A DNA stretch of 64,000 nt from the NCBI GenBank assembly GCA_965112735.1, contig OZ218956.1:3782001-3846000 (forward strand), written 5' to 3'. Numbering within the stretch: the stretch's first letter is position 1; the number at the start of each line of letters is the position of its first letter. This document shows positions 19,961 through 50,143 of the stretch, in pieces. The position numbers and the translations under genes are program-made. Below the pieces are notes generated by a model. That model saw nothing but the letters and a program-made list of their open reading frames with translations, made no database searches and was not told the origin of the DNA. Origin of the DNA: Phaeosaccion multiseriatum (lineage: Eukaryota > Protista > Ochrophyta, other classes).

Positions 19961-19998
<38 letters not shown>

Positions 19999-20002
19999 AT
20001 CG

Positions 20003-20049
<47 letters not shown>

Positions 20050-20586: not shown

Positions 20587-20670
20587 GCCACAGGAGCAGA
20601 GGGTGGAGGAGAGGGCACAGGGCAGAGGCGGGTCTAGCCTAGGCCCAGCTGGCGGGACTCACTTCACTTC

Positions 20671-20800
20671 ACCACAGAAGCAAGAGGTTCAATGAGAGTT
20701 TTGTCCGGTCACTTCACCAGAAGCAAGAGCTTCAATGCACCAGAAGCAAGAGGTTCAATTCACCAGAAGCAAGAGGTTCAATGAGAGTTTTGTTCGGTCA
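20671..20800. repeat. Short tandem repeat (CACCAGAAGCAAGAGGTTCAAT x4) downstream of the RING gene
   Basis: Four near-identical copies, two of them extended by GAGAGTTTTGTYCGGTCA. Confidence 0.85.
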
Positions 20801-21280
20801 GCGGACCGAAGAGAGGGGCGAGAGGGGCGCCACTCAATGCTGACGCTTAACGCCCCCCCCCCTCGTTGTATAACCAAGTGTACAGTAGGGGAGGTTGGGA
20901 AGGGAAAGGAATTTTTTTAAAAAAATAATTTAGATATTTTACCCTCCTTCTGTGCTTTGAGTGTGTATTGGGTTGAGATTCACTCTGACGATGCCCCCCC
21001 CCCCCCCCCTCAGTGGTCATCCCCCTCTCAGGGCAGCGCGTTGGGCGCGTCTGCCCCCCTGCATCCATCCACTGCCATCCTCCTCTCCCCCCTCCTCCTC
21101 CAATGTGTTCTCTCCCTCGCAGTAGGTGATTCCTACTAAGTCAATAAAAGTCCATTCCTCACGCCCACCGCCGTGCAAACAGGCAGTGGTCTCCCTCTTC
21201 CTGTTCTCCTCCTCGGCTCGCCCTGGCCTCTGAAACTCTTAGGTTGATTCCTGTAAGTCAATAAAATGGCCCCCCTCCCC

Positions 21281-27200: not shown

Positions 27201-27862
27201 TGAAGCGTATGCAAGAGGAGGAGATGTATCTGCGAGGCATGTTGACGGACTTGGGCGTGCGAGATGTGAGCAGCAAGGTGGTGCTGCCCAAGTTCCGCCT
27301 CACGGTCATTGAGAGCAAGGCACTGGACTACGACGACCGCCGCATGTGCAAGACGTGCCAGCACACGTGCTTCATGAGCGGCGTCAGCTGTGAGTGCACG
27401 CAGAAGGATGTGTGCTGCCTGCGGCACTGGCGCGACCTGTGCAAGTGCCCTCCCCAAAACATGTTCTTCTTCTTTTGGATGACGAAGGAGGACATTGATC
27501 ACATCGTCAGTGTGGCGGAGAGCTTTGTGAAGCGCCTCGAGGCCAACGGGGGCCAGGCCGTGGCCGCAGAGGCGGACAGCTTCCTGCAGAGGCTCATACC
27601 CTCCTCTCTCAGCGACGCGCAGGCTCTGGAGCAACAGCAGCAGCTTGAGCGGCAGCAGCAGCAGTTCGTGCAGCAGCAACGCCAGCAACTTGAGCAGGAG
27701 CAGCAGCAGGCGTTGGTGGCACAGCAGAAGGCTATGCAGAGTGTGAAGCAGGAGCAGCAGCAGGCGTTGGTAGTACGGCAGCAGGCTATGCAGGCCCTAC
27801 TGAAGCAGGAAGAGCAGCAGCAGCAGCAGCAGCGGGCGGCGGAGCAGCAACGCCAACAGCTT

Positions 27863-27896
<34 letters not shown>

Positions 27897-28468
27897 TCCA
27901 GGAGCAGTACATGATGCAGCAGATACAGCAGGAGCAGCAGAGGCATCAACAGTACATGATGGAGCAGTACGCCCAGCAGCAGGCTTTGCAGCTGCAGCAG
28001 CAGCAGCAGCAGCAACAGCAACAGCAGCAGCAGCAAGCAGCGCCCCCCCCCACGGCGCAGCTCGCCTCCCCCCCGCAGCAGCAGGAGCAGCAGCAGGAGC
28101 AGCAGCAGGATCCTGGCCAGGCCTCACAGTCCGAGCCCCCCCTGGCTCCACCCTCCCTTCCCGTACAGCAGCAGCTTCAGGAGCCGACCTCCGCCTCGGC
28201 ACTACCACAGAGCTCACAGCTTGTGCAAACAGTCTTACAGGAAGGCCAAACAGGGCAGGTACAGCAGGAGCAGGAGCAGCAGGCCCCCTCACCATCGGCA
28301 GGGGCAGCTCGAGTCAGCCCCGAGCCTCTGCCTGACGGGCCTGTCGGAGGGGTGGCCGGCACCGTTTGTGTGGCGGTCGCACCCAACGAGAGCGCCGGAG
28401 GCGGCTCCCCCTCCTTACCCGCTGTGCCTGCCGTGCCCACTCTGCCTGTTGTCATCGGGCACATGTGA
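24295..28468 (+). CDS. KDM5/JARID1-type JmjC histone demethylase (JmjN, JmjC, C5HC2 finger, poly-Q tail); exons ~24295-25200 and 25895-28468; start uncertain
   Basis: JmjN APTFFPTIEEFKDPLKYI. JmjC WNLNNL...PWLYIGMLFATFCWHTED...KQWYGVP...FPKAYHGG, with the Fe ligands H-x-E...H intact. C5HC2 CKTC...CEC...CLRH...CKC. Junction QQ|AIENS is phase 0. Confidence 0.92.
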
Positions 28469-29377
28469 CTGAGATGAAGCGCCCCCTCTCCCCCATATAC
28501 ACCATACACTGAGATAAGCGCCCTCCCCCCCTCTCTTGGCCCCCATACACGCGAACCTAAATGTACACAACAAATGAAGAGCCGGGAAGCGGAAAGGTCG
28601 CGTCGGTTCATTGCGGACCGAACACTCCCCACTCTTTTTGAATATACTTAGTACGATACATACACGCATGCATGTGCTACCACGCTCCTCTGTGCGAGAC
28701 ACCCACAGCCGACTTTTTCACTACCATGGATTCGATGCCCTGAACATCACAGCCGCTGTTCCCTCATCGAAGCAACAAGCACGCGCCTTTCATTCACAGG
28801 TCCCGCTCTGTATCACCAACTGTTGAGGCAAAATTTCCGTTGTCCCTCTCATTTCTTTTTTCCGCTCTCCACCCTCCTATTCAATATCTCTGCTACTTCA
28901 CAAGGCAAGGAGGACTCAGGCTCTCTCTAAGGAACCCTCTGCTTCACGATGGGTGAAGATAGAGTGTCAGGCGAGAAGGGCGGACAGGAAGTATGAAAGA
29001 AACACGGGAGACAGTTACGGAATGGTTAGGTCATCGGGTTGGCTGCAGCTGCGAGGGTGAGGCCGGAGAGCGCAAAACAAACGATCACCCACCCTACTGT
29101 ATTCCGTACTTACAGCAGAGCATTTTTAGTGTCTCCCCTCCTCAGACACAAAGGCGGTCAGGCATTGCACGCTGGCCATGAATGCGTCATGAGGATCAGG
29201 AGCACCACTTTATTTTGCGTAAAGAGCGTGTTCCTGCAGAGCGTCTTGCAGAGCGAATACCAGAAGCAGTAGCAGCAGCAGCAGCAACAGGAGGAGTAGC
29301 AGCAGCTGGTGGCGCGAGAAGGCCCAAAGGAACGCTCTTGTTGCGTGATTGACTGATCCCTCCACTGCACTCGAGCC

Positions 29378-29871
29378 ATGTCGGAGAGCCTCAGCACCAA
29401 GGCCTTCCGCCTCATCAGCCGCCCCTCCTTCGACCGCTTTATCATCCTGGTCATCGTGGTGAACTGCGTGTTCTTGGCTCTGCATGACCCCATGCAGGAT
29501 ACACAGCCCGACTTCCTCAACGTGGGGGACAAAGTGTTCACCGCCGTCTTCCTCGGGGAGATGCTCGTCAAGTGGTGCGCATTGGGCATGGGCGGCTACT
29601 TCAAAGACTACTGGAATTGGCTCGACAGCTTGGTGGTGGTGACGGGGGTGCTGGGCTTCTTGCTTGAGACGTTTGGGGGTAGTGTGCCCAATGTCAGCAC
29701 CCTCCGAACCCTGCGAGTGCTGCGACCGCTGAGGGCGGTGAGCTTCGTACCCGAGGTTCGGCTGCTTTTCGAGACCATCATCAAGTCAGCAGGGGTCATC
29801 GCAACCCTGCTGAGCTGTATCTTCTCCATCTGCCTGCTCTTTGGCAACTTCGCGTGAGTACTACGTGTGTA

Positions 29872-29929
<58 letters not shown>

Positions 29930-30836
29930 GTGTATGTGTATGTGTGTGTGTGTGCGTGTGCGTGTGTGTGTGTGTGTGTGCGTGCGTGAGTGCCTGTGTG
30001 TGTATATGTATGAGTACCTGTTTGTGCATGTGTGTTTGTGTGTGCGCGCGTGTGCATGTGCGTGCGCGTGTGCTTATGTGCGTGCAGCTGGTGGCACTCC
30101 CCCCCGCCGTGGTGTGAGTGATGACTCGATACGGGGAAGCACTTTGCCGCCGCTCGCCCGTGGCAGCTGAGCCTCACAATCGCAGGACTACAGCGCCTCC
30201 TTCGAAAGCAAGCCTTGGCCTCCCCTCCCACCCCCTGTCACACCCTGCCACCTTTGCAACTACGTCTTGCGGCTGACTGAAGCGACTCTCTGACTCTCCC
30301 TTTCGTCTCCAACACATGCATAATACCCCTAATGTTTGGGCACCTCCCCCCCCCTCCTGACGTACGAACGTACAGTTACACGTACTGGGGAGGCACCATG
30401 AAGCGCACTTGCTTCTCGCTGGTCAGTGGGCTCTCGTGCGCTGACGAGGGGGTGTCCTGCGACTGCGATGACTCCGAAGCGCTGCAGCCTCTGCAAGACA
30501 CGGTAAGTGTGACAGTGGCGTGACAGTGGCGGCCTTAGTCTCTTAGTCAGGACTTCTTGGGGGGGGCGGGTAGAACGGTGTCCCCCCTCCCCCCCCCATT
30601 TCTGTACTGTCCCTGCCGCGGCTTGTAACCGTCCCCACTGCCCCGTTTGATCCAATGATCCAATGATCCAATCGCTTTAGTGGGTCCCGCCGGAGCCCTA
30701 CGGTAATGAGCTCACGTGCAGCGCGGACTCCGAGGCGGGGTATGGCTGCCCCTCCTTCGCCGTGTGCTGCCCCTCGTCAGCCGCCCCCAACGCCGGCGTG
30801 ACTCACTACGACAACATCTACTCCGCCTCCTACCAG

Positions 30837-30926
<90 letters not shown>

Positions 30927-33900
30927 GTTTGTGCGTGTGTGCGTGTGTGTGTATGCGTGTGTCTCCATGCGTGTGTGTGTGAGTGTGTGTATGTGCGTGT
31001 ATACGTGTATGGGTGTGTGTGGGTGAATTTGTGTATGCGTGTGTGTGATTGTGTGTGTGCGTGTGCGTGGGTGTCCAACGCCGGCGTGACTCACCAAGAC
31101 AACACATATTCCGCCTCCTTCCCTCCTTCCCTTCCTCCCATCCTCTGCCATCCCTCCACAGATGTTCACGATGGTGTCTATGGAGGGCTGGTTCAAAGTG
31201 GCGGCGCTCACGGCCGATGCGGTGGGAAGCTGGGCGGTGCTGGCGCTCTTTGTGGCGTTACTTTTGGGCAACGTGTGTTTCGTGTTGCTACTGCCTGCCG
31301 CAATGAGCACCAAGCTTCAAGTGGCTATCGAGGAGAAGGAAAAAATTGACTTGCTGTTCGAGCAGGAGAGGGAGGGGGCCAGAATTGAGGGGGGAGGAGG
31401 GGAGGGAGAGGGTGGGGTGGGGGGAGGGGAGGGCGGTGAAGCGGGAGGCGGGGGGGGAGGGAGAGGAGGAGGAGGAGGAGGAGGAGGAGGAGGAGGAGGG
31501 GGGGGGGCAAGGAAAGGGGTGGGGAAAAGCCAAGGTCGATCCTCCTCCTCCTCCTCCTCCGCGGCCGGCAAGGGCAAGGCGCTGTCGGAGCTGGAGCAAC
31601 TGCTGCAAGACTACAACAAGTACCAGGAGAAGGAGATGGCCGGCATCGAGCACGAGGAGGCAGTGAGGAGGGGGGTCATTAAGGAGAAGCCCGTCGAGGA
31701 GCCTGCCCCGCCCAAGTACACGCCCTATCCTACCCACCGGGGCTGGAGGTGGCTGAGGAGACTGGTCACGGCAGATACAGGGCCCTTCGCAGCGGCGGTG
31801 TATGTGATCATCTTCCTCAACGCGGCGTTGCTGACAATTGTGAGTGCGGGGGAGGCGCCTGACACCACGTACGCGCTGCTGCAAGTGAACTATGTGTTCA
31901 CTGCCTTATTCGTGGCGGAGGCCCTGATCAAGATCCTCGCTTTGGGACCCGTGGGCTACTGCCAAGACAGGTGCGCGTGAGTGTGTGTGTGTGTGTGTGT
32001 GAAAGAGAGAGAGAGGGTGTGTGTGTGTGTGAGTGTCTGTGTGTGTGCGTGCGCGTGTATTCGTGTGTGTATGTATGTGTGTGTGAGAGTGAGTGCGCCG
32101 ACTACCATCCTTTACTTTCCAACATACGGAAGCATATGGAAGCTTGGAGTTTCGGCGGAGGGGACGCTGGTGGAGTAGGAGGAGCAATCAAAAGCAGGAA
32201 GGGAAGGGAAGGGAACGCTTACATCTCTCATCCTCCCTGCTCCCCCCCCCCCCTTCACCCACACACGCCCGCCCGCCTCCACTCATACCCTGCCATCCAC
32301 TGCCATCCACTACCATCCACCGCCATCCCTCCCCCCCTGGGCAGATACAACGTGTTCGACTTGTTCATAACTTGCCTGGGGGTGGTGGAGGTTGGCCTTG
32401 AGGCGATACCCTTCTTCGCCGCCTTCCGCATTGTGCGCATCTTCCGAGTGGCGAGGGTCATGCGGCTCGGCTCCCTGGCCAAGATGGGGGGGAGGGGAGC
32501 GGATATACAGCAGTCCACGCCTTCACCACAGGTAGGGAAGAGGGGGGGGGGAGAGGAGCGCTTGCTTCAAGGCTCGGAGGGGAGGGGAGGGAGGGGTTGC
32601 TGTGCTGGGGTGGTAAGGGGGCGGGGTAGCAGCAGCAACAGAGAGGGGCAGGGGCGGGGGGAGCCTTGGGAGCGGAAGAAGAGCAAAATTGTTGACAGCG
32701 TCCAGAGCAAGCTTACAAGCACCCACCCCTCCACCCCTCCACCCCTCCCTCCCTCCACCCCTCCACCCCTCCACCCCTCCACCACTCCATCCCCTCCCTC
32801 CCTCCCTCCCTCCCTCCCTCCCTCCCTCCCTCCCTCCCTCCCTCCCTCCCTCCCTCCCTCCACCCCTCCCTCCACCCCTCCATCCCTCCACCCCTCCACC
32901 CCTCCACCCCTCCACCCCTCCACCCCTCCACCCCTCCACCCCTCCACCCCTCCACCCCTCCACCCCTCCACCCCTCCACCCCTCCACCCCTCCACCACTC
33001 CATCCCCTCCCTCCCTCCCTCCCTCCCTCCCTCCCTCCCTCCCTCCCTCCCTCCCTCCCTCCCTCCACCCCTCCACCCCTCCACCCCTCCACCCCTCCAC
33101 CCCTCCACCCCTCCACCCCTCCACCCCTCCACCCCTCCACCCCTCCACCCCTCCACCCCTCCACCCCTCCCTCCCTCCCTCCCTCCCTCCCTCCCTCCCT
33201 CCCTCCCTCCCTCCCTCCCTCCCTCCCTCCACCCCTCCACCCCTCCACCCCTCCACCCCTCCACCCCTCCACCCCTCCACCCCTCCACCCCTCCACCCCT
33301 CCACCCCCTCCCTCCCTCCCTCCCTCCCTCCCTCCCTCCCTCCCTCCCTCCCTCCCTCCCTCCCTCCCTCCCTCCCTCCCTCCCTCCCTCCCTCCCTCCC
33401 TCCCTCCCTCCCTCCCTCCCTCCCTCCCTCCCTCCCTCCCTCCCTCCCTCCCTCCCTCCCTCCCTCCCTCCCTCCCTCCCTCCCTCCCTCCCTCCCTCCC
33501 TCCCTCCCTCCCTCCCTCCCTCCCTCCCTCCCTCCCTCCCTCCCTTCCTTCCTTTCCCCCTGCACAGCTGGACCTTACCCGCATCCTGGGCATCCTTGCG
33601 TCAAGCTCCATGTGGCTGCTCAACATCTTCTCCATCCTCACCCTCTTCATGTACATGTTCGCCGTCTTGGCAGTGCAGTTCTTCGGGGGAGACATTCCCG
33701 ACCTACTCACAGATACCACCAACGGATTACAATTCACCTACAACTCGTTTGGAAGGGCCTTTGTCACGGTGCTGGGGCTGTTCACCGGCAACCGATGGGC
33801 GGATATGGTGTACACCACTGTGGCGGAGAAGGGGGAGGACACAACGGGTGCAGAAGGGGTCTACTTGTTCTACATTGCCTGGTGAGTGGGGGGGGGGGCG

Positions 33901-36900
33901 TGTATATAGTGCGTGTGTGGGTGGGTGCGAGGGAGGGAGGGGGAGCGGGAGGGGGTGGGAGGGAACACGGGAGGAAAACCTACGGCCGCAGTAAAAACGG
34001 CTCCTTCACGCGACGTACGTACCTCGCTACTTGTGCGCGTCTCCTTCCTACCCCTTCTGTCGCCTTTCCCATCCTTCCGTGACCACTCCTTCCGTGACCA
34101 CTCCTTTCCTGACTACTCCTTCCGTGACCACTCCTTGCGTGACCACTCCTTCCCTGACTGCTCCTTCCGTGACCACTCCTTCCGTGACCACTCCTTCCCT
34201 GACTGCTCCTTCCGTGGCCACTCCTTCCCTGACTACTCCTTCCGTGACCACTCCTTCCGTGACCTTTGGTACCAAAAAAGGACGGTGGTGGGTCGGTGGC
34301 TGCTGTCGGCCATCGTTGTAGCGGTGCTGTTCTACGAAGTCGACAAGGATGGAGAGGACCACCTCAAGCTCGTGGCCAGGGGCAACATGCGGGCCGTATT
34401 TGCTGTGGAGAGAGCCTACAGCAAGGGGCTGAGGAGCGCCGTGTACATGAAGTGGAGAAAGAAGTTTGAGGCCAGCGCCATGGGCCGGCAGAGGTGCGCA
34501 TGTGGAGGGAGGGGGAGGGAGGATTGGGAAGGGGAGGGAGGGGGGTGGTGTATGTGTGTGTGTGCGTGTGTGTGAGTGTGTGAGTGTGTGTGTGGGTGTA
34601 TGTATGTATGTGTGCGTTTGTGTGTGTGTACGTCTATGTATGCGTGTGGCTGCTGCTCTCGGCCCTCAGCGATGAAGACACCGCGTACAATGTATGCGGA
34701 TGCTTGTGAGGCCCTAGCGGAATGGTGCCTCTGACTGAATGCCTTTGAATGCCTCTGGATGCCTCTGTATGCTTCTGTATACCTGTGGATGCCTCTGGAT
34801 ACCTCTGGATGCCTCTGGATGCCTCTGTATGCTTCTGTATACCTGTGGATGCCTCTGGATACCTCTGGATGCCTCTGGATACCTCTGTATGCTTCTGTAT
34901 ACCTCTGGATGCCTCTGGATACCTCTGGATGCCTCTAACCGATCGCCTCTCAGTGCCTTCGGATGCCCCTGGATGTCTCTAGCTGAATGCCTCTGGAGTC
35001 CTCTGAATGCCTCTAGCTGAATGCCTCTGGATCTAACTCATCGCCTCGGGATGCCTGTAACCCAAATGCCCCCGACTGCATGGGTCCTGAGTAGGAGGGC
35101 GGGTGGAGCCATCAAACTCATCGCCCCCGCCGTGCAGCCCCCGAAGCAAACTCTCTGGCGCCGCCTTGCCGACAGTCAGGACAGCTTCTTGCTCTTCGCG
35201 GAAAACAACCCTGTCCGGCAGTTCGCCGCCTGGCTCACAGATGGCACCTCAGTCACAGACGGCAGCAGATTCGACTCTCCTCCCGAGGAGCCTGAGGGGG
35301 GCAGGATGTCCAAATGGCATTCCGCGGTGGTGTACAACCAACAGCTGCGGCGGGCCTGTCATTACGCCTTCGAACTTTGCTTTGTGGGGGTGGTGGTGCT
35401 GAGCGCGGTCACCGTGGCGCTGGATGTAGAGTTCTTGTCGGGACATCGCTCGGATGAGGGGCTAAGAGAGAGCTTGGTGCAGCTCGAGCGTTTCGAAACG
35501 GCCTTCTTCTGCGGGGAGATAATGCTCAGGTCCATCGCCAACGGGTAAGTGAGTGAGTGAGTGAGTGAGTGAGTGAGTGAGGAGTGAGTGAGTAAGTGAG
35601 TGAGTCAGTGAGTGAGTAGTGAGGGAGTGAGAGAGTGAGTAGGGGGTTTCGGTGGGCGGGTGGGCGTGTAAGTGAGTGAGGGAGTGAGTGAGTGAGTGAA
35701 GGGAGGGAGGGAGGAGGGGAACGCCGGGGAGAGGAGAGGGGAGGGGAGGGGAGGGAGCGAGGAAGGATGGAAGGGAGGGAGGGAGCGAGGGACGAGGGGC
35801 GAGGGAAACAGCAGGGGAGAGAGAGGGAGGGAATACGTGAGTGGGTGGAAGGGAGAGGGAAAGAGAGGGAGAGATAGAGAGGGAAGTGAAGTGAGTGAAG
35901 TGAGGGAGCGAGAATGAAGTGGATGTGTGACAGTGACTGACTGACTGAGTGACTGACTGACTGGATGGATAGGACTGGAGAAGGAGCATCCACCTCACCT
36001 GGGGGGCCGTTCCTCTCCAAGCCCTCCAAGCGCGTCCTTCCCCTCCTCCCCGTGACAGTGAGGGTCAAGGGTCAACGCCCCAACCCAATCAACAATCGAA
36101 CGACCTCAACCCCCCCCTCCCCACCCCCCGTGATTCTCCCAACGAACATTACCATGCCATGAACTAGGCTGTACTTCCTCCCTGGAGCCTACCTGGAGAG
36201 CCCTTTGGCCAAGCTCGACTTGCTCGTCACCGGCAGCGGCGTGCTGAGCCTCTGCCTCGACGACTCCCTGCTTGACTCGGACTCCGGGTCGGGAGGACAG
36301 AACGCCACCACCACCACCTCCCTCTCCGCCCTCCGCATGCTTCGCCTCACCCGCCTACTGCGTCTGCTCCGCCTCGGCTCTCGCTCCAAGGCCCTGGTGC
36401 ACCTCATCGAATCACTGCGTAAGTCAACAAGGGCCATGTTGCTCTCCTCCCTCATAGTGCTCTTCTTTTGGTACCTGTGGTCCGTCATGGGGTTGCAGCT
36501 CTGGGTGGGGCGCTTCGGTTACTGCTCCGACGACGGACGGGCACAGGCCAACGGAGTCAGCGAGTTCCACATCTGGGCATCCGGCTCTGGCTCTGGCGAC
36601 GACGATAGCGACGATGCTGGCGATGACTGGACCGAAGTACCAACTCGCGAGGCTTGTGAGGCGGACCCCTCCTTGCGCTGGGTGGGGCACGCCCTACTGA
36701 ACTTTGACGACTTTGCACAGAGCCTCTACTCCGTCTTTGTCATATTCGCCATGGATGACTTCCAGCAGGTCAGGAGGGAGGGAGGGAGGGAGGGAGGGAG
36801 GGGGGAAGGGTGGGGGGAGGGAGGGAGGGAAGGAGGGAGGAATGGTGTGGGTCATGCCTTTGCTGCGCTTTGGGTGCTGTACGACTTCCCCGAGTCCTTC

Positions 36901-38355
36901 CTTAGGCATCGAAACAAAATCAACGCCATCTGTGATACACAAACTCAACCAACTCAATGCCGCTTCTCTCCTCCGCTCCTCCCTCCCCTCACCCCTCCCC
37001 CCCCCCCCCCTCCTTAGATCATGTTCTCCGCCCTGAGCGTGAACGGCGCCTCCGAGTCGAACAACGCCGCTCCTTACAGCAACATGTGGGCGTCCCTCTT
37101 CTTCTTCTTCGCCATCCTGAGTTTCTCCCTGCTTGTCTATCTCTTTGTGGCCGTACTGTACTCCACCTTCATGTACCTCAACTACACCTCCTCGAGCAAC
37201 CGCCTCAACACCACCAAGGAAGCTTTTTGGTACATGTACCGTTACAAACTCTTCAACATTCCGCCCATCGTCGGCGCGAAACGGCCCCTCTCCACGCTCC
37301 GCGGCCGCCTCTTCGACGCCATGGTCTCTGTTCCTGCCGTGGCCGGCGCCCCTCCTGACCAGCAGTCAAGCCGCCCTCCGTTCGATCGCGCCTTCTCACT
37401 GCTTTTGGCGGCCAACATCTCTATCCGTTTCCTCTACGGCGGGCTGTCTCCATCCTACGACCACATGCCGGCCTGGGTCAAGTTGCAGGAGATAGTGTTT
37501 GCAGGCCTGTTTGTGGCGGAGTTTGGCGTGCGAGTGTTCGCCTCGGGGGGTTTCCGAGCGTCCATGCAGTCCCCCTATAACGTCATGGACCTCGCTGTAA
37601 CCGTCGTCATGGCGCTCTTGGGGGTGAGTGGGAAGGGAGGAGAAGGCAGTATACGGACATGGCCTGTGGGCACCGACTCCTCGCCCGCCAGTGATCCTCG
37701 CCAGTGCTCCTGACACCCGTGACTGACCTCACCTGTCTGTGTATGACTGACCTAACCTGTCTGACCTGTCTGTCCGCTCCAAGGTCCTGACACCCCGTCC
37801 GGACACGCCGTCCTGACACCCCTAACCCTGTTCCGCTCCGTCTCAGGTGGACTTCCTGCTGGGGGCGGCGTCGAACTCTTTGTGGAAGCTCGTGCAGGCC
37901 GTGTCTCTGGTGCGGGGGGTGCGCCTCGCCAAGGCCTTTCCTTGTGTAATGGAGGTAACAGCAAACAGAAGCGTGACATTCACATTCATATTCATATTCA
38001 TATTCATATTCATATTCATATTCATTGACGTTCGGGATACTTGGTTGTAGAAAGTCGGTGTCGATATTGTGCATAGGCATCGATTTGGGTCCGTCATGGC
38101 AAAGGTGCAATGAACTAAAACTGAAACTCAACTCAACTGAACTGAAACTCAACTGAGCAGGTGGCCACGGTGGGTTGGAGGAGCGTACCCACGCTTGCCC
38201 CTCTGCTGCTGCTGCTCTCTCTGTGCACCTTCATATACGCCGTGCTAGGCGTCCTGCTCTACGGACATCTCGACACTCAGGTGAGGAGGGGCGCACGCAC
38301 GCACGCACGCACGCACGCAAACACAAACACAAACACACACACACATACACACACA

Positions 38356-38399
<44 letters not shown>

Positions 38400-41300
38400 C
38401 TCTCTCTTTCTATCGCACACTCTCCCTCTCCGTCTCACCCCCTGATGTTCTGTGGTCCTATCTGAATCCCCCCCCCTGCTGGACTCCACAAGGACGAGGA
38501 GGAGGTGGGCTTATTCGGTCCCTCCTGGACGCTATTCTCCCGCCACATCGGCTTCTCCTCCGTGTGGAAGGCAGGCATGACCCTCCTCGGGGTGGCCACA
38601 AGCCCGGGTACGTGCGTGGCTCGAGCCTTAGGGGGCCGGGCACTTGAGACTTGAGGGGAGGAGGTTAGTTACACTTACACTTCGTACGATGAGGCTCAGG
38701 CTGTGCTGTAGGAGATAAAATTACGATTGTGCTACCATTGAAGGGTGAAAAGTAAGACTTTGAGCCTGTGGGGTGGAGGCCCATTGAAGGGTGAAAAGTA
38801 AGGCTTTGAGCCTGTGGGGTGGAGGCCGAGGTGAGGCTCAACTCCTGCTGTCCCTCCCCCGCCACCCCACAGGCTCAAACATGTGGATCTCTACGATGGA
38901 GGCATATCGGCTAGAGGAGGAGCCTCGCTTCCGTTGGGGGGTGGTCTTGTTCTTCTCCTCCTACGCCTTCCTCACGCGCTTCCTACTGTGGAACCTGTTC
39001 ATGATGTGCCTTCTCTTCAAGTTCAAGATACATGGGAGGGACAAGGTAGGGAGGCGGGGGGCAAAGCCAGCATGCACGCATGCACGCACGCGCGCACGCA
39101 CGCACGCACACACACACACACACACACACGCACGTGCTGCCTCTCCATCTGCCTGTTCATATGCCTGCCCTGCTCATATATCTCCCCAGGTGGGTCTGGC
39201 GGTGCAGCAGCTGGAGCAGTTCCGCAGGGCGTGGCAGGTCGTGAGCTTCGACCAGACGGGCAAGCAGACGGGCAAGCAGACGGGCAAGCATATAGTTCGG
39301 CACATCGGCAGCCCCCTGGGGGGAGTCAGACCGAACCCCTTCAAGATCAGAGCGGGGCAGCTTGTGTGCTTCCTGCGCACGCTGTCTCCACCCCTGGGGA
39401 CGGGCCCTGCCTCAAGCGTGCTCGAAACTGAAGTGCTTGCTGAGAAGGTACTGTCATAGTATAGAGGGGAGGGGGGGCTGCAAGAGAGAGAGAAGGAGGT
39501 GTAGATAATATAGGGTCTGGGGTTTGGGCCGACATTGGCTCATCTCATCTCATCTCCTCTCCTCTCCTCCTTTCCATGTCACCAACTTCTCGTGTCAGGT
39601 GCTTGTGTTGATGGGCAGACATTGGGCCGCCCCCCTCGGGGAGTACTACAGCAGCAAGAGCACACACGCACGGGCAAGTACGACGCTCAGCGCCTTCCTC
39701 TCTCGCCCCTCCCTCCGCGACAAGCCGTTACGCTTCCGAGACGTGCTCGTAGCCGTACACAAGCTTCTGGTGTTCGGGCTGGTGTTACCCAATGAGAAGG
39801 AGACCAAGGAGAGGAGAGGAAGAGCCCAGGCCAATCTGTCTCTTCTCAAGCTTGCCGTGCACAGTTTCCTTGACAAGAAGGCGGGGGGCACAGGGGGTTT
39901 GGGGGGGGCGCAGCCCCGGAGGGGCATGACGGCGGCGCCGGGCGGGGCGGGGGCAGGACCTGCCGTGCCAAGATCAGAGGGTTGCAACAGCGAGGTAAGG
40001 GAGTGTAGTGCAGTGCAGTGCAGCAGAGGCCGGGAGGAATGGAGGGAGGGAGGGACGGACGGTACTGGCTGGATGGGGGGGCTGCGGCGGCGACTGCTAA
40101 CTGTGTCCCTAGATGACCAACTGCCACGGCTGGATGGGGGCTTGTCGGCCTGAGGTTGCATCTCGTCTCTCTGTCCTCTCCGAAGGCGAAACTGAGAATT
40201 GGCAAGCAAGTGCAAAACTCAAACTCCAACTCGCCCATCCCCGCTGCGCCCCTGCCCGTGCCCCTGCCCCATGCAATGCCCATATGACTGCCCACTCCCC
40301 CCACCTTTCCCCCGTCCCTGCCCCGTGCCCCGTGCCTCCTACCCCCCCCATCCACTGCCATCCGTCTGCCCCCCAGGCAATGCAGGAGATGTCTCTTCTG
40401 CGGCGCCAGAGCCCTTCTCACTACGAGCTGTCGAAGCGCTGCGCCGTACTGTTCCAGGGAGAGTTCTTGAGGTGGACAGAGGCCATCGATGAGGAGGGCC
40501 TCACGCACAAGTCAAGGAGGGAGGGGCAGTGCCTGTTGGCTGCCATCGCACGGGAGGTCAGTCAGTCAATCACTCACTCACTCAGTCAGTCAGTCAGTCA
40601 GTCAGTCAGTCAGCCCAGTCCTGACAGCCCTCGTCTCTTTCCCAGACTTACTGCCCCTCACTGACTTACTGTCCCTCACTGACTTACTGTTTCTCACTGA
40701 GCAGGTGTCTACCTCTGCCCTGCGAGAGGTGGTGGAGGGGCGGCTGTACGAGCGACACGTGGGGGACAGGAGGCAGAGGGCACGCTTCACGGCCGCCAAG
40801 AAGGCACACACCGCCCTCAAGGAGATCTACAACAGAGTCAAGCAAACGGAGGTAAGGGGACGGATGGGCAGGGGGCTTGGAGGCGTAGTATGGGCATGGA
40901 TGGAGGCGTAGTATGGGTATGGATGGGCATGGATGGAGGAGTATGGGCATGGATGGGCATGGATGGAGGAGTATGGGCATGGATGGGCATGGATGGGCAT
41001 GGATGGGCATGGATGGAGGAGTATGGGCATGGATGGAGGAGTATGGGCATGGATGGGCATGGATGGAGGATTATGGGCATGGATGGGCATGGATGGAGGA
41101 TTATGTCCATGGATGGGCATGGATGGAGGAGTATGGGCATGGATGGGCATGGATGGAGGAGTATGGGCATGGATGGGCGTGGATGGGCATGGATGGGCAT
41201 GGATGGAGGAGTATGGGCATGGATGGAGGAGTATGGGCATGGATGGGCATGGATGGAGGATTATGGGCATGGATGGGCATGGATGGAGGATTATGTCCAT

Positions 41301-44300
41301 GGATGGGCATGGATGGAGGAGTATGGGCATGGATGGGCATGGATGGAGGAGCATGGGCATGGATGGAGGAGTATGGGCATGGATGGGCATGGATGGAGGA
41401 TTATGCGCATGAGGCTTGGCGCTTGGGGCTTGGGCTTGAGCACTGGAAGGCACTGGAAGGCCACCCCTCTCACCCCTCTCCCCTCATCTCGTTGCCTCTC
41501 TCCCCCCTCAGGCTATGCACATCACCCCTACATGGGACGGTGCGACGCTCAGCACAACTCAGCGGATGCGGATACAGACACCGGGCTCTGGCGCCTCCCC
41601 CCCTTGGGCAAGGACCCCCCCCGGGGCAAAGGGTAAAGCCAAGGCCGCAAAGGGTTCCCTCCCCGGAGGTGGTGGCGATGATGTTGGGGGTGGTGTGGGT
41701 GTGGGTGTGCGTGCCATGTGTGGCTCTGCGTGCGGCGAGTGGCTCTTTCTGAGCTGCGATGACGCCGCTGTGAGGGTCTTTCGACGGCGGAAGCGCAAGC
41801 CGGACTACCAACTGACGCAGCGCCTCGAGGTGGGGGGGCAGTCATACGGACAGGGGCAGGGGCACGTTGGTGGGCCTGTTGGTGATACAGTAGCGGGGCC
41901 TGTGGGGCACTGCATGTGCTGCTCGGCGGAGGGCAAGCACGTGTGGGTGGGCTGTGAGGATGGCACCGTACGGCACTTTACGCAGGACCTGCGTGCCTGG
42001 AAGGACGCCCTGGCCAAGCAGCAGCAGGCGTATGGGCAGCAGAGGGCCGACCATGTGGGCAATTCCGGTCCTGACACCGGGGGCGGCAAGCATATGGGCA
42101 ACAAGAGACCGGCCCGGCCCGCCATCCCCTACCGAGCCGACAAGGTGGGCAAGGGGCACAGTGCGAGTGTGCGCTGCATGGCCCAGGCCTTGGAGAGGGG
42201 CCTGCTCTTTACGGGCGGGGCGGAGGGCTCAGTGAAGGTGTGGAAGTGCTCCAAGGGGGGAGGAAGCTCCCCCGCCCTCTCCTGCGATGTGTCCGGCGGC
42301 ATCGTGGGGGGCAAGCCTGTGCGCTGTCTCACGGTTTGGCAGCCCGAGCTGTCCGACGCGGTGCTGGCGGCGTGTCTGTCTGTGGATGACCAACTGGTGC
42401 TGGAGCCGCCGCGCTACCTCCTGGCTGGAGACGGGTTGGGCTTCTTGTCTGTGCTGCCCCTCCGCTCGGACGCGCGCTTCCTCACAGGACTCGACGTCTG
42501 GAGACCCATATACCGCCAGAAAGTCGCAGAGGGCGGTGGGCGCAGCAGCGGCGGCGGTGACGGCTTCACAGATGGCGAGGGCGTAACGGCTGTCGAGGTG
42601 GCGTGGGGCCGCATCTATACAGCGAGTGGCGACAACGGTACCATCCGGGTGTGGGAGGTGGAGTGGGACAGTCCGGAGTCGGACATCAGCAACCCCAGCG
42701 CCAAGGACAGTAGTCCCAAGGGCAGTCCCAAGGGCAGTCCCAAGGGCAGTCCCAAGGGCAGTCCCAAGGGTACTCATCATACCCATGAGGGCGCACCCTT
42801 GCCCCTCGTCGGGGGGGGGCTGTCGGGCCTCACAGGCATGACTCCGTCATCTGTGATCCGAGGGTTGACTCAAGTGGCGCTCATCTCCACGCACTCGGGG
42901 CCCGTCACGGCGCTGGTGGCAGGGGGAGGCTTCCTCTTTAGTGCGAGCGCGGACCTCTCCATCGTTACCTGGCACAAGCCGCTAGAGGACAAGCAGCAGC
43001 AGCAGCAGCAGCAGCAGTTGGTGGTACGACAGGAGAGGCGAGCTAGCGGCGATACAAGTAGTAATCTCGCGGCGGAGGTCAGCAGCCGAGGCACGGGATC
43101 TCCCTCTCCAAGGGCCCCTCCAAGGGCCGCGGGATACTGGCCTCAAAGTCCCGGGGGGGAAGGCTCGTCGCCGCGCCGAGGAGAAGACGAAGAAATGGAG
43201 AAGAAAGGAGAAGAAGAAAAGAAGGAAGGAATGGCGGCCTTCGCGCAAGCACTGTTCGACGCGTCCTCACCCTCGCCCACCCCCATACCCTCACCCGTGC
43301 CGAGCAGAAGAGGCAGCGCCACCTCCTCCTCCTCCGCCGGAAAGGGCTCTGGTCCTGTTACTCTGTCGCCATCTGTAACGTCGTCGCCAACCACGACCAC
43401 CAACACGCTACACGCCCCCCAGCCCGGCACCATCCTGCACGAGGAGACCGTGACGTGTATGCACGTGACGCGCGACGCATGCATCTCCGCCGACCTCAAG
43501 GGGACGGTCGTGGTGCGCCGCCCGGGCAAGTGGATACAGACCTACAACATACGGGTGAGTGAGTGAAGGAGTGAGTGAGTTAGTGAGCGAGTGAGGGAGG
43601 GAGGGATGGAGGGAGTGGGTGGGTTGGTGGGTGGATGATTGGGTGGGTTGGTGAGTGAGTGAGTGAGTGGGTGGGTGGGTGGGTGGTTGGATGGGTGGGT
43701 GGGATGGTGAGTGAGTGAGTGGGTGGGTTGGTGGGTGGATGAGTGGGTGGGTTGGTGAGTGAGTGAGTGGGTGGGTTGGTGGGTGGGTGAGTGAGTGAGT
43801 GAGTGAGCAAGCGAGCGGGGCCTTCCTTCTCGAGTCCTTTGTGAGCCCTTTTGTTGAGTCCTTGTGGGGCAGGGGAAGCACGTGTTGGGGGGACCCTCTC
43901 TCTTGCATTACGTATGTATGCATGTGTGTCTTATGTATGTCTACGTACATCTCTCTCCTCCTCTCACTCACTCACTCACTCACTCACTCACTCACTCACT
44001 CACTCACTCTCTCTCTCTCTCTCTCTCCCTTCTGTCTCTCTTTCTTGCTCTCCCTCTCTCCCTTGCCCCCCCTCTATCTCTTGCTCTCTAAGGTGATGCC
44101 CTCTGCAGCGGAGGTAGAGAGGCTCAAGCCCCTCGCCATAGAGACCCTTCGCGCCTACAAAGCAGCGGGGAGGGTGTCCACAGTCGGAGGAGTAGGCGGG
44201 CCCGGGGGAGGGACGGCAGGGGAGCGAGGCGGGGGAGGAGGAAGAAGCGGAGGAGGAGGAGGAGGAGGAGGAGGAGGAGGAGGGGGGGGGGGGCGGTGGA

Positions 44301-46293
44301 CGTGAAGGAGGGGGAGGGGGGGGAGAGGGGCCCGACGCGTCCTCAGGGCCTGCCATGAGCGCCACCGCACAGTCCATGCGGGTGCGTGACGGGGCGGTTA
44401 TGATAGAGGCGTATGGGGAGGGAGGGACGGAGGGACGGAGGGACGGAGGGAGGGAGAGGGGCGAAGAAGGCCCTTTTGCTGGAGTGTTTTCTTCGCCCGC
44501 ACACACACACACACGCCCGCACGCACACACACACATACACACAAGCACACCCATACTCCGTCCTACTTCTTCATCCGGACTCCCTACTCTCTCCTCCCGT
44601 CGATATCGCATTTCAATCTCCACCTATTCTCTCACCCCCACTGCCCCTCCCCACTCACATCCACTGCCATCCCGTCAGTTCCTGCTTGGTGCCCGTCAGC
44701 GGCGTGCTTTGGCACGAAAGTCGAGGGCCAAGGCTCACCGCGCGGCACTCGCGCTCAAGTACTCACAACAGACATATGGGCAGGGGCAGGGGCAGGTATA
44801 TGGGTCACTGGCCCACACGCAGCAGCCGCAGCAGCAGGATGCCACGCTTCATCGTCTCGCCTCTGGCACTGACGCTGGCCGTGAGTCTGCCTCTGAAACG
44901 GGCACTGAAACTGGCAACAGCATGATGGCCTACGACCCCCGGGCCACGCTCGTCAGCACCATGCACTTGCTTTCGGCCAGCGACAGTCACACGCAGTCCG
45001 ACAAGTCCTCCTTCAACTCGTTCGGCCAGCAGCAGGGGCAGCGCGGCTCAGGCCTGAGCTCCTTCCCCTTCCCGTCATCGGGGGTCTCCTCCTCCTCCCC
45101 CTCCTCTGGCGGCGGCGGAAGCGGGGGCGGGCCTTCCCTAGCCGCCTCGCAGACACTGCTGCTCAAGGCTCTGCATTTTGGGGGCGTTTTGGCGGGAGAC
45201 GGCATCGCGTCTACTGCCATCCCCCTCAGCATCGCCAAGAGAACCACACCTGATTTCCTCCGGCCAGAGAACGTGAGTGCTTAAGTTCGTTCTGGCCCAG
45301 CCGCGGAGGGGGAGGGAAGGGGGGACGTTCGATCGCTCCTTCGTCTCTGTCGCCCTTCAGCAGCACCTTTCATTCCATACCATTCCCTCTCACTCTCTCA
45401 ATCACCCACTCTCTCACTCTCTCACTCTCTCACTCTCTCACTCTCTCACTCTCTCACTCTCTTGCTCTCTCACTCTCTCACTCTCTCACTCTATCACTCT
45501 CTCACTCTCTCACTCTCTCACTCTCTCACTCTCTCACTCTCACTCTCTCACTCTCTCACTCTCTCACTCTCTCACTCTCTCACTCTCTCACTCTCTCACT
45601 CCATCACTCCATCACTCTCTCGCTCTCTCACTCTCTCACTCTCTCACTCTCTCACTCTCTCACTCTATCACTCTCTCACTCTCTCACTCTCTCTTCCCAT
45701 ACTTCGTATTGGCCGACTGACTGCGCTATCCTCCGTCCCTCCGTCCCTCCCTCCCTCCCTCCGTCCGTCCGTCCGTCCGTCCGTCCGTCCGTCCGTCCCT
45801 CCCTCCCTCCCTCCCTCCCTCCCTCCCTCCCTCCCTCCCTCCCTCCCTCCCTCCCTCCCTCCCTCCCTCCCTCCCTCCCTCCCTCCCTCCCTCCCTCCCT
45901 CCCTCCCTCCCTCCCTCCCTCCCTCCCGTCCTCCCTCTCTTTCCTCCCCTCTCCTCCCCCGCTCGCCCCCCCCCCCCTCCAGCATCCTGCCTACGACTCT
46001 TTCCTCGTTCACCCCGACATGTACACAGCCGAGCTCATGGCCTATCACTGGCCCATCCTGCCGCTCCAGCCATCCAAGTTGGTGATACAGAAGGCCGCCA
46101 AGCAGGGGGAGGCACTGGACGAAAGCCTTTCGATGACTGTTGCCCCCGGGATGCCGGACTGGAGTAAAACCCCCCGGGGGGGAGGCACCAGCCCCAGGAG
46201 GAATGACGAAACAAACCCCCCTGTTTACTCAATAGATACCCCCACGGAGGTAGGAGCGAAGGGAAGTTTGCCCTGCGCTACTGCCGGCTGCAG

Positions 46294-46327
<34 letters not shown>

Positions 46328-47592
46328 CCCTCTGTTTCTCTCTCTCTCGATCTCCCTGTCTCCTTCTCCCTCTCTCAGTCTCTCTCCATCTCCCTGCTTG
46401 TCGGCCTGCGACGCAGTCAGGCGGGCATGTGTATCGTCCTTGTTGTCAGGCCGTCTGCCCATGTATTTGTGCTGTGTAGAGTAGTCATCCTGCTACGTTT
46501 ACCCTTTCACCGACCCCTTCCGACCCCTTCCTTGTCCTGTCACCGCCCGTCACCCTCTTGCCGCGAATGGAACTTCACCCCATACAGACCCGAGGGGGGC
46601 GCGACCTCGATAGCCTGCGGGGTGGCAATCAGATGGGCAATCATATGGGCATGGCTGCTGGCAAGGCTCCGTCCCGGGGGGGCTCACGACCGTCGCCATC
46701 CTCCCTTCCGCGAGGTACTCCACAGGGAAGCGGACGGCGCCCACTGCCATCCAGAGTCGACGTGAGAGGTGTGAGGGGCGGAGAGAGAGGCGCCGCTGCT
46801 GCTGCTGGTGCTGCCCTAGGGGACCACTCGGCGGAGGATGAAGAAAGTGAGGCCGACAGTGACGAGGGAAGTGAGGAGAGCAGTGAGGAGAGCAGTGACT
46901 ACGAAGGGGAGGAAACAAGTGACGGGGACAGTGACGAAGCCAGTGAAGAGGAAGAAGAGGAAGGAGAGGCGCACTCCTCTCTGCGACCACCGCCCAAGCC
47001 CAAGCTCGAGAGAAGCATGAGCAGCACTTTTCGCAGCAGCCGCAGGTTTGGGAGGCGCGTTGGTGGTACTCCGTCTGAGGCGTCGTCGACAAGTTCAAGT
47101 TCAAGTAGTAGCTTCTCCAAGGCCCTTCTCGGGTTCTTCGGGGGGGCGACAGGGGGCGACAGAGGCAAAACGGATGCTAACGAGCCCCCAGCTGCTCACC
47201 GGCCTCTGTCGCGGCCTCGGCCTGCAGAGCGGATCCTTGGCGGGATTGGCGGGGGAGTGTTCACCCTGTCAGAGGGAGAGGACGAGGACGAGGACGAGGG
47301 CGACGAAGACTATTACGACAGTGACGACCAGAAGGAGGAGGAGGAGGAGGAGGAGGAGGAAGACAGTGACTATGAAGGGTATGAAGTTGGAGATGGATCT
47401 TCGCGAGTGAGCGATGACGGAACGGGGTCAGGGTCAGACTCCTCCGCGAGGTGTTTCCGAAGCGAGATGGGGTCCGCATTGGCCTTGGAGGAAGGGCTCG
47501 GGTTAGGGAGGGGCAGCGGGAGTGTTAGTGTTATGGGCAGCATGATTAGCGAGAGCGACGGGAGCGACGACAGCGGCGGCAGTCGCGGGTAG
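29378..47592 (+). CDS. Four-domain voltage-gated cation channel alpha subunit (Cav/Nav-like, divergent) with a C-terminal WD40-like region, ~3,200 aa. 23 predicted exons: 29378-29853, 30376-30502, 30681-30836, 31162-31970, 32345-32531, 33568-33881, 34281-34493, 35095-35544, 36168-36768, 37018-37623, 37847-37954, 38161-38280, 38493-38607, 38873-39045, 39190-39447, 39599-39994, 40377-40556, 40705-40851, 41512-43554, 44093-44381, 44679-45272, 45983-46249, 46588-47592
   Basis: Four S1-S6 units. S4 segments [39 protein letters not shown] and a degenerate fourth. Domain I WNWLD. Post-S6 QLEQFRRAW...LRTLSPPLG...LRFRDVL matches the Cav/Nav EF-hand-like tail. All junctions are phase-compatible except one frameshift in the G-run 44282-44293. 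Exons after 40851 are less certain. Confidence 0.85.
29865..30085. repeat. (TG)n degenerate microsatellite, channel intron 1 (similar tracts at 15997-16066, 30837-31070, 31971-32095)
   Basis: Visible dinucleotide arrays. Confidence 0.93.
32725..33545. repeat. Compound (CCACCCCT)n/(CCCT)n satellite, channel intron 5
   Basis: Alternating blocks of 8-mer and 4-mer units. Confidence 0.96.
34072..34263. repeat. 15-bp minisatellite (GACCACTCCTTCCGT)x~12, channel intron 6
   Basis: Head-to-tail units with point variants and no unique spacers. Confidence 0.95.
34736..35032. repeat. 10-bp minisatellite (GCCTCTGGAT)n with 60-bp higher-order periodicity, channel intron 7
   Basis: The 60-bp lines starting at 34741, 34801 and 34861 are near-identical. 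Confidence 0.93.
35545..35965. repeat. (GTGA)n and purine-rich (GGGA)n tract starting at the donor site, channel intron 8
   Basis: gtaagtgagtgagtgagt... Confidence 0.88.
40887..41411. repeat. 10-bp-unit minisatellite (GGATGGGCAT/GGATGGAGGA/GTATGGGCAT), channel intron 18
   Basis: About 52 tandem 10-mer units. Confidence 0.95.
43555..44030. repeat. (GTGA/GGGT)n at the 5' end and (CTCA)n/(CT)n at the 3' end of channel intron 19
   Basis: 43555-43806 and ~43962-44030 are mutually complementary repeat classes. Confidence 0.9.
45388..45940. repeat. (CTCTCACT)n followed by (CCGT)n/(CCCT)n, channel intron 21
   Basis: Visible tandem arrays. Confidence 0.93.
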
Positions 47593-47938
47593 AGATGGAG
47601 CAGATGGATTGACTTTCTTCAATGCATGGACTTGTGATTACATAGATTTGGCGTTTCCATGCCCATATGCCCATTCGTCTATTGGCCCTTCCATGCAAGT
47701 GAGAACACTGCAGTGAGGCAATAAGTGTCACCCACCCCCCGCCTCGGCCATGGACTTGATTTTTATTTTTTTACTGATTATGGTCGGTGCATACCATAAC
47801 CAGGTGAGCCCAGCGCCGAGGAGGGAGGGAGAAACTGACCCACACTATTACATAAAACAAAATTACATGGTCTCATTTCAATACATGCACGTTCCGCCCT
47901 CTCATGGCAGTGGAGGGGCCCTCCACCCCCGTCTCCTG

Positions 47939-50143
47939 CTACCCCCGCCATCTTCGGAGCCAGCGTCTCAGCAAACCTGTCTGTCTCCTCTCCAGTTCTT
48001 CCGTCTGCCTCCCCTCCGATGCTTCCTTGATGGCTTGCGTAGATGCTCTCCTCCTGTCCAAGTCTTCCTTGATGGTCATCTCAAAAGCCCTATGTATCGG
48101 AGAAATCATCTTGCTCCTCTCCTCCTCCCACAGCACATTGCTCTTAAGCAGGTACTGGAGACTGAGCTCTTCCTTCTCATCCGTCACATCATCAGGTAGA
48201 AGCTGCAGAGGAGACCCATGCAGCTTCTCCAGCACGCGCAGGCGGCAATCCTCGGCATCAAACCCTGCGTCATCCCAATCCTTACCCGGCACTTTCAGAA
48301 AAAGCTGCAAAGTCGACTCCTTGCGCAGCTCTAATGGTGGAGTCAAGTACCCCCGCCATTCCTCTCCGTGTGACCTCCAGGGCCTCCTTCAGAGTCTTTC
48401 CACTGCGGAGCCTGGAGTGCACTTTATGGACCTCCCCCGCATGCCCCCCCACCACATCCCACAGTTGTTTGAACTCATCTGCGGTAAAAAACTCGATGCG
48501 CTTGCCGTTTTCGAGACACTCCGCATCTCGCACGAGCTCCCTGCGCGCCTCTTCCTTGGGCCACAGCGTCACCTCTATGGCCTTCAACGACTCCGGCGAA
48601 GACTGCAAATACGGTTGGAGGTCGCCCCAGAGACACTCGCAGCTCTCCACGATCACAGGTACCCTAGAGGTTCCCTGCTTTCGATTCTCAAAAGTGGTGA
48701 ACAGAGCGTCAAACACAGCCTTACCTGCCGCTGTGCTACTGCCTTCGTCCACTGTGACCAGGTCCTGCACCTCCCTCACAATGTTTGTCTCTAACTCCTT
48801 CAGTAGCTCATTGTAAATGGTGACCCCAGGAAAAGCCTTCAAAAAGGTCTGAACAATTATAGCCGCGGCCAGGGGGATGGAAGAAGTATCGCCTGCGCTC
48901 AGAGAGCTTAGGGCTTTCGCCAGGAGCTCATCATCGTTGGCACTGATACCAGTCTTCAGCTGCGCCAAAACAGCCCTAAATTTTTCCATGCCTCCCTCCA
49001 TGATCTTGGGGACCATTTCCCCCAAGGTGGTACTAACGGCTCCGTCTTCGCCCACTCTCTGAACCTCTTTGAAGTATTCACTCCACGTCATGGAAGGAAG
49101 TGTCTCGAAGTCAATGTTGACCGTCTTTAGATCGATCTCCACCACCAGCCTCCCCTCTGCTCTCCACTCCTTGATGGCCTCCTGCATGGTGCGGGTCTTG
49201 CCCACCGACTTGCGGCCCCACACCATCAGGACTTGCCTCACCGGAGTCTCAAGCACGTACCCCTTCAGACCCTCAAGATAGGCGCCGTGGTTAATGCGGG
49301 GCAGCTCCTGCGTGCCTGATACAAAACGAACAAGAATCCGACGTCAGTGCGCAGTCATACAATAAGAGTCGCACGTTTGCTAGACTGGCACCTTCACGCT
49401 CTTTACCAGCAGCCTACGCCATGACTCGTACCTTTCCACCGCCTCGAGGGAGGCTCTCCATTATCGTGCTTCATGTACAGAGCAGAAGACACGCCACGAG
49501 TCGGACTTCGACATGGGCCACTCGCTACGGCCCGGCCCCTGTGGGAGTGCAGTGTTCTTGGGGCCTGCCACGCCGTATAAAGCCCAGCAGGGACGCTGGG
49601 AAGAAGCAAAGGAGCACAACACGGGCATGTGACACAGGGTGTGCGGGCAGGTCAGGCCGGCACAGCATGGGAATTCAAAGCCGACGAGACAGGAAGATAG
49701 CAGATGAGAGTACCAGAAGAAGACAGAGAGGAGCACAGACTGAAGGAGAGGGAGAGACAGGAAGAGAGAGAGAGAGCAACACGTGGAAGAGAATAATACC
49801 AAACGCCCATCACCGACACCACCTGCCCCAAAAGACCGTAAAACAAGCACTCGACTGCGTGGGCAGATACAAAGAGGGGATTCAAGAACAGAAAGAGACA
49901 GAGACAAACACAGCGAGAGAGAGACAGAGGAGAGAGACAGACGGGGCGAGAGAAATCTCACCTACCCCAACAAGCACCACCCATCACAATGCTGCTCTTA
50001 CCGTACTTCATGCTCCTGGTGGGAGCTTCGGCCGCGGGGGAGTGTGGCCCGCCAATGTGCAACGCCACCGCCGGTCCGCCGGAATGAAAGGCCAGCCCAA
50101 GGCGGGCTACCAACCCCAGCAGCAAAAGCATGAGCACCCGCAT
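47939..50143 (-). CDS. P-loop ATPase (archaeal-ATPase/STAND-like), frameshifted near 48300; main exon 49315-47939, upstream exon 49595-49432, probable signal-peptide exon from 50143; possible pseudogene
   Basis: Walker A VLMVWGRKSVGKT, Walker-B-like IVREVQ, strand VPVIVES and the GxP-equivalent LWDVVGGH. The C-terminus (LQYLLKSNVLW) is in another frame. I could not fully reconcile the 5' exon phases. Confidence 0.62.

Follow-up and report, generated by a model that had tools for sequence, protein, structure and literature searches.

A predicted fusion of a four-domain voltage-gated cation channel and a WD40 propeller in Phaeosaccion multiseriatum

Introduction

A stretch of 64,000 nucleotides from the genome of Phaeosaccion multiseriatum (positions 3,782,001 to 3,846,000 of contig OZ218956.1 in assembly GCA_965112735.1; here called the window, with positions counted from its first letter) very probably encodes a protein in which a Cav/Nav-type four-domain voltage-gated channel runs on, after its last transmembrane segment, into a seven-bladed WD40 propeller. 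An earlier note made from the DNA letters alone had proposed that channel and propeller belong to one polypeptide, and this claim is borne out by comparative evidence, namely frames without a stop through both parts in two contigs from other organisms (L011 and L012), a gene model of the brown alga Discosporangium and a conserved spacing of 44 residues across the join. The channel-propeller protein appears from its sequences to be a conserved but rare family, with members in a basal brown alga and at least three other microbial eukaryotes. In the window the fusion is likely to be the product of one long intron-rich plus-strand gene, which starts at about 29.36 kb, reaches at least 44.17 kb and may go on as far as 47.59 kb.

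The alpha subunits of Cav and Nav channels are among the best-studied membrane proteins, and to our knowledge their regulation by WD40 proteins, that is by G-beta-gamma and scaffolds of the RACK1 type, occurs in trans only. Full-text literature searches on voltage-gated channels, stramenopiles, brown algae and flagella did not turn up any account of a four-domain channel that contains a WD40 domain, and the word WD40 is absent from a survey of FVCC channels across eukaryotes (PMC5824947), from the brown-alga genome paper (10.1101/2024.02.19.579948) and from a survey of diatom channels (PMC11085791). The deposited channel-propeller sequences are all unnamed or partial predictions, and surveys of domain architecture miss the family because automated annotation splits or truncates the genes. 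A conserved natural fusion offers a defined case, amenable to test, in which a propeller is fixed permanently to a Cav/Nav-type channel. It points to a partner, or to autoregulation, in algal excitability, and the process concerned is probably flagellar or gamete signalling, which is the role usually assigned to stramenopile four-domain channels (10.1101/2024.02.19.579948). As such it is of interest to channel biologists, and would amount to a new principle only once function is shown.

Relatives that carry channel and propeller together

An exhaustive representative search with the open reading frame (ORF) that holds the WD repeats of the window gave just three matches below an expect value (E) of 1e-10. 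One of these, P0002 (E 3.1e-54, 41% identity), is CAM9119973.1, a protein of 1,415 residues from the basal brown alga Discosporangium mesarthrocarpum (GCA_964200235.2), and its 24-exon model on locus L010 unites an Ion_trans domain (domain IV) with the C-terminal region of the channel, the propeller and a tail. The annotation of L010 has two models, one at 588-8753 with domains I-III and one at 9504-21766 with domain IV, propeller and tail, the latter flagged 'partial'. The two look like one channel gene split by the public annotation.

A second match, P0003 (E 2.5e-11; 1,546 residues), derives from a Logan contig of 6.1 kb (L011, from run SRR24908242, G+C 48%), where one stop-free frame of 1,599 codons (39-4835) leads from an acceptor site via channel domains III and IV and then the C-terminal region into the propeller with all seven of its blades, and because this is a single stop-free frame the fusion needs no splicing assumption there. 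On L012, a metagenome contig of 33 kb from JGI (3300071654, G+C 61%), a single ORF of 1,440 codons has three Ion_trans stretches (E 3.5e-84) and takes in domains II-IV, the linker and blades 1-3, while blades 4-7 (P0004) start 24 nucleotides after its end. This 24-nucleotide gap, at 9978-10000, contains a stop and lies in sequence that reads …CCTGCAG/GTGCC. Judging from this sequence, a very short intron is more likely than a broken gene. On L014 (G+C 35%) the motif FxxILIAxHxxAxxGLxLPDE of the channel C-terminal region (pairwise E 4e-10) is found 70 nucleotides upstream of an ORF that holds the linker and the entire propeller (pairwise E 5e-28). Since their G+C content spans 35% to 61%, L011, L012 and L014 come from different organisms, and the architecture is therefore conserved and not the artefact of one gene finder.

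The relatives also match the window in the same order. With P0002 as the query, tblastn gives a collinear series that starts in domain IV (38517) and proceeds through 38929-39456, 39728-39853, 40359-40571, 40702-40842 and 41905-43557 to 44090-44155, and the L012 ORF maps collinearly from domain II onward; on the channel side the matches to P0002, to P0003 and to the L012 ORF are all collinear as far as 40842. Two family alignments (A1 and A2) show blades common to the window and the relatives, with blade residues conserved between the window and four other organisms. Word-index protein searches with the WD ORF, with residues 880-1340 of P0003 and with residues 250-900 of P0002 returned only the queries and generic WD40 proteins, but being length-limited they have little bearing on full-length relatives. 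Scans of metagenome loci with P0003 and the WD region of the window gave no relatives, and a feature search of the ESM Atlas with P0003 gave no usable match.

The channel half

The exons of the window were searched individually. Both of the domain types named in the earlier note, Ion_trans (PF00520) and WD40 (PF00400, over its cut-off), were matched by Pfam. The Ion_trans matches fall into five exon groups (29423-29854, 31786-31977, 33577-33882, 36181-36780 and 37378-37617), and the rest of the S5-pore-S6 segments, including those of domains I and IV, can be read from the translations between them, as can the Arg/Lys ladders of S4 in all four domains. The S4 of domain IV is less charged, which is so also for P0002 (STVRFIRIGS). 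Taken together the exons are predicted to give one polypeptide with four Ion_trans repeats in tandem, each of six transmembrane segments, their joining resting on splice sites and not on RNA.

A GPHH signal follows domain IV in the window channel at an E of 0.02, below its cut-off, and weak GPHH signals are present in each of the four family members tested; an IQ domain was not detected by Pfam. Against solved structures the L012 ORF, which is the continuous ORF of a relative and not the exons of the window, scores E 4.6e-66 with Cav3.2, 1.3e-63 with Cav1.1 and about 1e-40 with Nav. Judged by sequence the channel half resembles Cav channels. Four-domain voltage-gated Ca2+/Na+ channels (Cav1-3, Nav, NALCN) have been surveyed across eukaryotes as the 'FVCC' family (PMC5824947), and the predicted channel resembles them in its four Ion_trans repeats, its S4 arginine ladders and the Cav-like EF-hand/GPHH-type region after domain IV, but differs in having about 700 or more extra C-terminal residues which would form a seven-bladed WD40 propeller.

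The propeller and its proposed likeness to G-beta

The propeller is coded by a single exon within a frame (frame 0) that is open for 708 codons, 41440-43563, and since stops are expected about every 36 codons in DNA of 63% G+C (our own estimate) such a length is far beyond chance. All six of the peptides quoted in the earlier note as WD-type repeats occur in the frame-0 translation of this stretch, and the six blades listed there stand, although a seventh at 42313-42468 (KPVRCLTVW...), which aligns to blade 4 of the relatives, had been missed. The count of seven is derived from the alignment and the strand pattern. Pfam WD40 (PF00400) scores 40.6 bits in the window against a cut-off of 27 (E 2.9e-10), 51.4 bits in P0002 and 71.4 bits in P0003, and a paralogue of the WD exon was not found in this genome. 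From about 41740 onward the G+C content at third codon positions (GC3) is 0.70-0.84, compared to 0.78-0.84 in the channel exons. Low GC3 and atypical codons are seen in the 41512-41733 linker (GGT over GGC) and in the 42982-43434 insert between blades 6 and 7 (GAA over GAG). These look like fast-evolving disordered segments within an otherwise strongly biased exon, and disordered or low-complexity inserts of 40-152 residues are present between several of the blades.

With family alignment A2, made up of seven sequences of which five are partial or truncated, AlphaFold2 gives a confident propeller core (predicted template-modelling score 0.65; predicted local distance difference test, pLDDT, >=70 for 298 residues and >=90 for 144), the stretches of low confidence being confined to the low-complexity inserts between blades, whereas the model from the single sequence is poor (pLDDT 35.6). 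Foldseek returned at least 500 PDB matches for the fold, the best 50 of which are all WD40 propellers, led by RACK1, Ciao1, Tup1 and LIS1, with a template-modelling (TM) score by target of up to 0.67 to the seven-bladed Ciao1 and RACK1. Blades 5-7 carry a strongly conserved signature specific to the family, AWxR[IL]YTA..DG and HSGPVx[SA]L...GGxLFSASxDxS[IV]V.

Animal Cav2 channels are inhibited in trans by the WD40 propeller of G-beta-gamma, which binds the I-II linker and the termini, and the earlier note had suggested, with this precedent in view, that the fused propeller could be a built-in regulatory module. In its explicit form the proposal is that the propeller is a cis-acting G-beta analogue that binds the channel's own cytoplasmic loops and keeps gating 'reluctant' until it is released. 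The precedent in Cav2, a seven-bladed propeller on the cytoplasmic side of a Cav-type channel, lends itself to such a view, as do the strong conservation of blades 5-7 across the family and the helical linker that precedes blade 1, which is long and could let the propeller reach the channel loops. However the matches do not point to G-beta. The 606 PDB sequence matches of the family profile are headed by designed propellers, FBXW7, beta-TrCP and Apaf-1; UTPs and RACK1 are also among the best 60, and no G-beta is among those best 60. By fold G-beta first appears at rank 29 and then at 40 and 47, its TM by target of 0.55-0.59 falling short of that of RACK1 and Ciao1 and being no better than that of Tup1. 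A specific affinity to G-beta over other WD40 proteins was thus found neither by sequence nor by fold, and the built-in G-beta-like regulator gains no specific support and seems rather unlikely. In contrast to the G-beta-gamma of Cav2 the propeller here would be a covalent part of the alpha subunit, and on profile and fold model alike it is best taken as a generic seven-bladed WD40 propeller, not specifically G-beta-like.

Other known systems offer partial likenesses. RACK1 and Rabconnectin-3 are WD40 scaffolds that bind Cav2 channels in trans (PMC6599304). They share with the present case a generic propeller as the docking surface, and RACK1 ranks with the best matches by fold (TM by target 0.60-0.66), but they are separate proteins, whereas here the scaffold would be coded in the channel gene and has the family-specific signature. 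Channels of the TRPA, TRPN and TRPV types carry ankyrin-repeat N-termini as built-in scaffolds, and so likewise have a repeat-protein interaction module fused to a six-transmembrane-type cation channel, a likeness that suggests tethering, or force and partner coupling. They differ from the present case in repeat type (ankyrin in place of WD40), in terminus and in channel family. A scan of the P. multiseriatum genome with the Ank_2 profile gave 188 matches, and none of those listed adjoins a channel locus.

What the propeller may do

In the predicted protein the Cav/Nav-type four-domain channel would be followed, in order, by a proximal C-terminal region that is Cav-like, a helical linker some 250 residues long, the seven-bladed propeller and a variable low-complexity tail. 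Because it is located after the last transmembrane segment the propeller would be cytoplasmic and permanently tethered under the pore. WD40 propellers serve as docking platforms, and for this reason a built-in scaffold is the most economical reading: most likely the propeller would fix the channel to a partner, such as an anchor in the cytoskeleton or flagellum, a regulatory peptide or a signalling enzyme, and through that docked partner would set where the channel is located and possibly how it gates. A link of stramenopile four-domain channels to flagellar signalling has been drawn (10.1101/2024.02.19.579948). A direct role of the propeller in gating, as a covalently tethered alternative to the G-beta-gamma control of Cav2 that binds either cytoplasmic loops of the same channel or a signal-dependent ligand (for example a phosphopeptide) and so switches voltage-dependent opening, is unlikely, although if true it would mean that flagellated stramenopiles have a four-domain channel with receptor-type regulation directly built in.

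One gene or two

Across the region between channel and propeller, splice sites were enumerated from anchors set on homology-supported residues at each side, the short exon flanks being joined to test continuity of the frame. Only five stop-free GT-AG pairs connect these homology anchors and the pair 40852/41511 is the best by far, which makes the join of 40851 to 41512 very likely on splice-site and homology grounds. Unspliced, the channel frame stops at 40909-40911. The proposed intron of 660 bases is mostly tandem repeat, and the other introns of the gene are similarly rich in microsatellites. The repeat at 40890-41411 is open in all three plus-strand frames, and Logan contigs break and depth rises there, suggesting that its unit is repeated elsewhere in the genome. 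The only apparent 'joints' at the locus proved spurious, with 21-letter sides in C-rich repeats.

The stop at 40909-40911 could instead mark the end of a channel gene, with a neighbouring gene for a WD40 protein starting at the ATG at 41515 or at one near 41716, shortly ahead of blade 1, and the fusion would then reduce to a conserved gene order. Several observations weigh in this direction, or at least against a single polypeptide. The ATG at 41515-41517 comes directly after the acceptor, one codon inside the WD exon, and the first 220 or so bases of that exon (41512-41733) carry a weak signature of coding (GC3 about 0.6), so that a separate or additional WD-only transcript is possible. The four sequencing runs found to contain the locus, from one sample of one study, are DNA only, with contigs spanning introns and exons alike. 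The Discosporangium model is itself a prediction, whose annotators split the channel into two models, and the channel part of L012 finds equally weak matches in C7, C1 and C12 of this genome, so orthology of the channel body is not demonstrated by simple search.

Two adjacent genes nevertheless seem quite improbable. In both L011 and L012 channel and propeller share one stop-free frame. Across the proposed splice there are 44 residues to a conserved tryptophan (...ITPTW) in the window, and the same 44 are counted in P0002 from LFDRHVGDRR to ...DFAW, where a phase-0 intron of Discosporangium lies only two codons away from that of the window. This tryptophan, the W of TPTWDG, is coded right after 41512, and it and the residues that follow align to internal linker residues of P0003, L012 and P0025. 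Further, 41440-41511 is a textbook pyrimidine tract ending in a CAG/G acceptor, and a 3' untranslated region, a promoter and a 5' untranslated region would have to fit into only about 600 bases, mostly of tandem repeat. The WD40 stretch is very unlikely to be a decaying or non-functional remnant or an artefact of assembly, for in spite of the low-complexity inserts that interrupt the blades and the poor single-sequence fold it has 681 stop-free codons with a strong GC3 bias over the blades, blade residues shared with four other organisms, a confident core when folded with an alignment and an identical sequence in four DNA runs.

Beyond the propeller

The propeller frame meets an apparent stop at 43564-43566, which is removed by a second phase-0 intron whose best acceptor is at 44092 (Table 1). 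The short exon that follows is homologous to P0002 with a z of 3.1 against shuffles, its donor AGG/GTGTCC at 44174 is within one codon of the end of the Discosporangium exon, and with this homology-supported exon in place the protein continues past the apparent stop. Of the long acidic tail that the earlier note placed after the propeller, these first 27 codons hold good, and the ORF at 46558-47592 exists and may belong to the gene. The candidate exon at 44679-45272 has a coding-like codon bias, whereas the bias of the acidic ORF (46558-47589) is weak, with a GC3 of 0.64 and a GAG to GAA ratio of 32:15 compared to 39:4 in the sure exons. In a comparison of 44174-48300 with the tail of P0002 no significant similarity was seen beyond 44155 (z <=2.5), Pfam gave no domains in the tail ORFs after 44173, and tails vary greatly among the relatives. 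A long tail to 47592 as part of the gene is plausible from its open frames and splice sites.

The locus

The source assembly comprises 67 Mb in 22 contigs. Coordinates of the features in the window are collected in Table 1.

Table 1. Features of the channel-propeller locus and its neighbours, in window coordinates.
Feature	Position	Strand	Description
Upstream neighbour, last exon	27002-28465	+	C5HC2 zinc finger, E 6.5e-14; weak KDM5 C-terminal helical match; then a very long poly-Q/QQE tract
Predicted four-domain voltage-gated cation channel, exons and introns	29357..40851	+	Domains I-IV, Cav-type proximal C-terminal region, helical linker
Proposed phase-0 intron	40852..41511	+	Donor AG/GTAAGG; acceptor CCTCTCTCCCCCCTCAG/G
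Tandem repeat in the proposed intron	40890-41411	+	522 bp, units of 30 and 190 bp, ATGGGCATGGATGGAGGAGT-like
Single exon, 681 codons	41512..43554	+	Short conserved linker (W of ITPTWDG), 45-residue low-complexity insert, seven WD40 blades
WD40 blades 1-7	41734-41790, 41905-41988, 42154-42252, 42313-42468, 42580-42666, 42889-42981, 43435-43530	+	Aligned with the relatives
Phase-0 intron	43555..44092	+	Donor CGG/GTGAGT; acceptor ...CTCTCTAAG/GTG; rich in (GTGA)n and (CTCA)n
Short exon, 27 codons	44093..44173	+	Homologous to P0002 residues 886-907, KVLPEEEEMRSLMPLAVEAVKA
Possible further tail exons	44174..47592, e.g. 44679-45272 and acidic ORF 46558-47592	+	Open frames with phase-compatible GT/AG sites
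Convergent AAA-ATPase-like gene downstream	48285-49256	-	Weak ATPase_2/AAA_16 similarity, E 3e-5, under cut-off

The upstream neighbour is, by its domain matches, a JmjC/KDM5-type histone demethylase, and the convergent downstream gene has its 3' end some 700 bases away from where the acidic ORF ends. The plus-strand unit is therefore confined by its neighbours to about 29.3-48.2 kb.

Base composition in the window is about 60% G+C, and the exons have a GC3 of about 0.8. Microsatellites and short tandem repeats such as (GT)n, (CCTCCCTC)n, (GTGA)n and (CTCA)n fill the introns of the channel-propeller gene, as at 29855-30280, 30850-31080, 32500-33570, 43555-44090 and 45290-46000. Long spurious open frames, 'ORFs' of the SLTHSLTH- and PPSLPPSL-type on both strands, arise from these intronic repeats.

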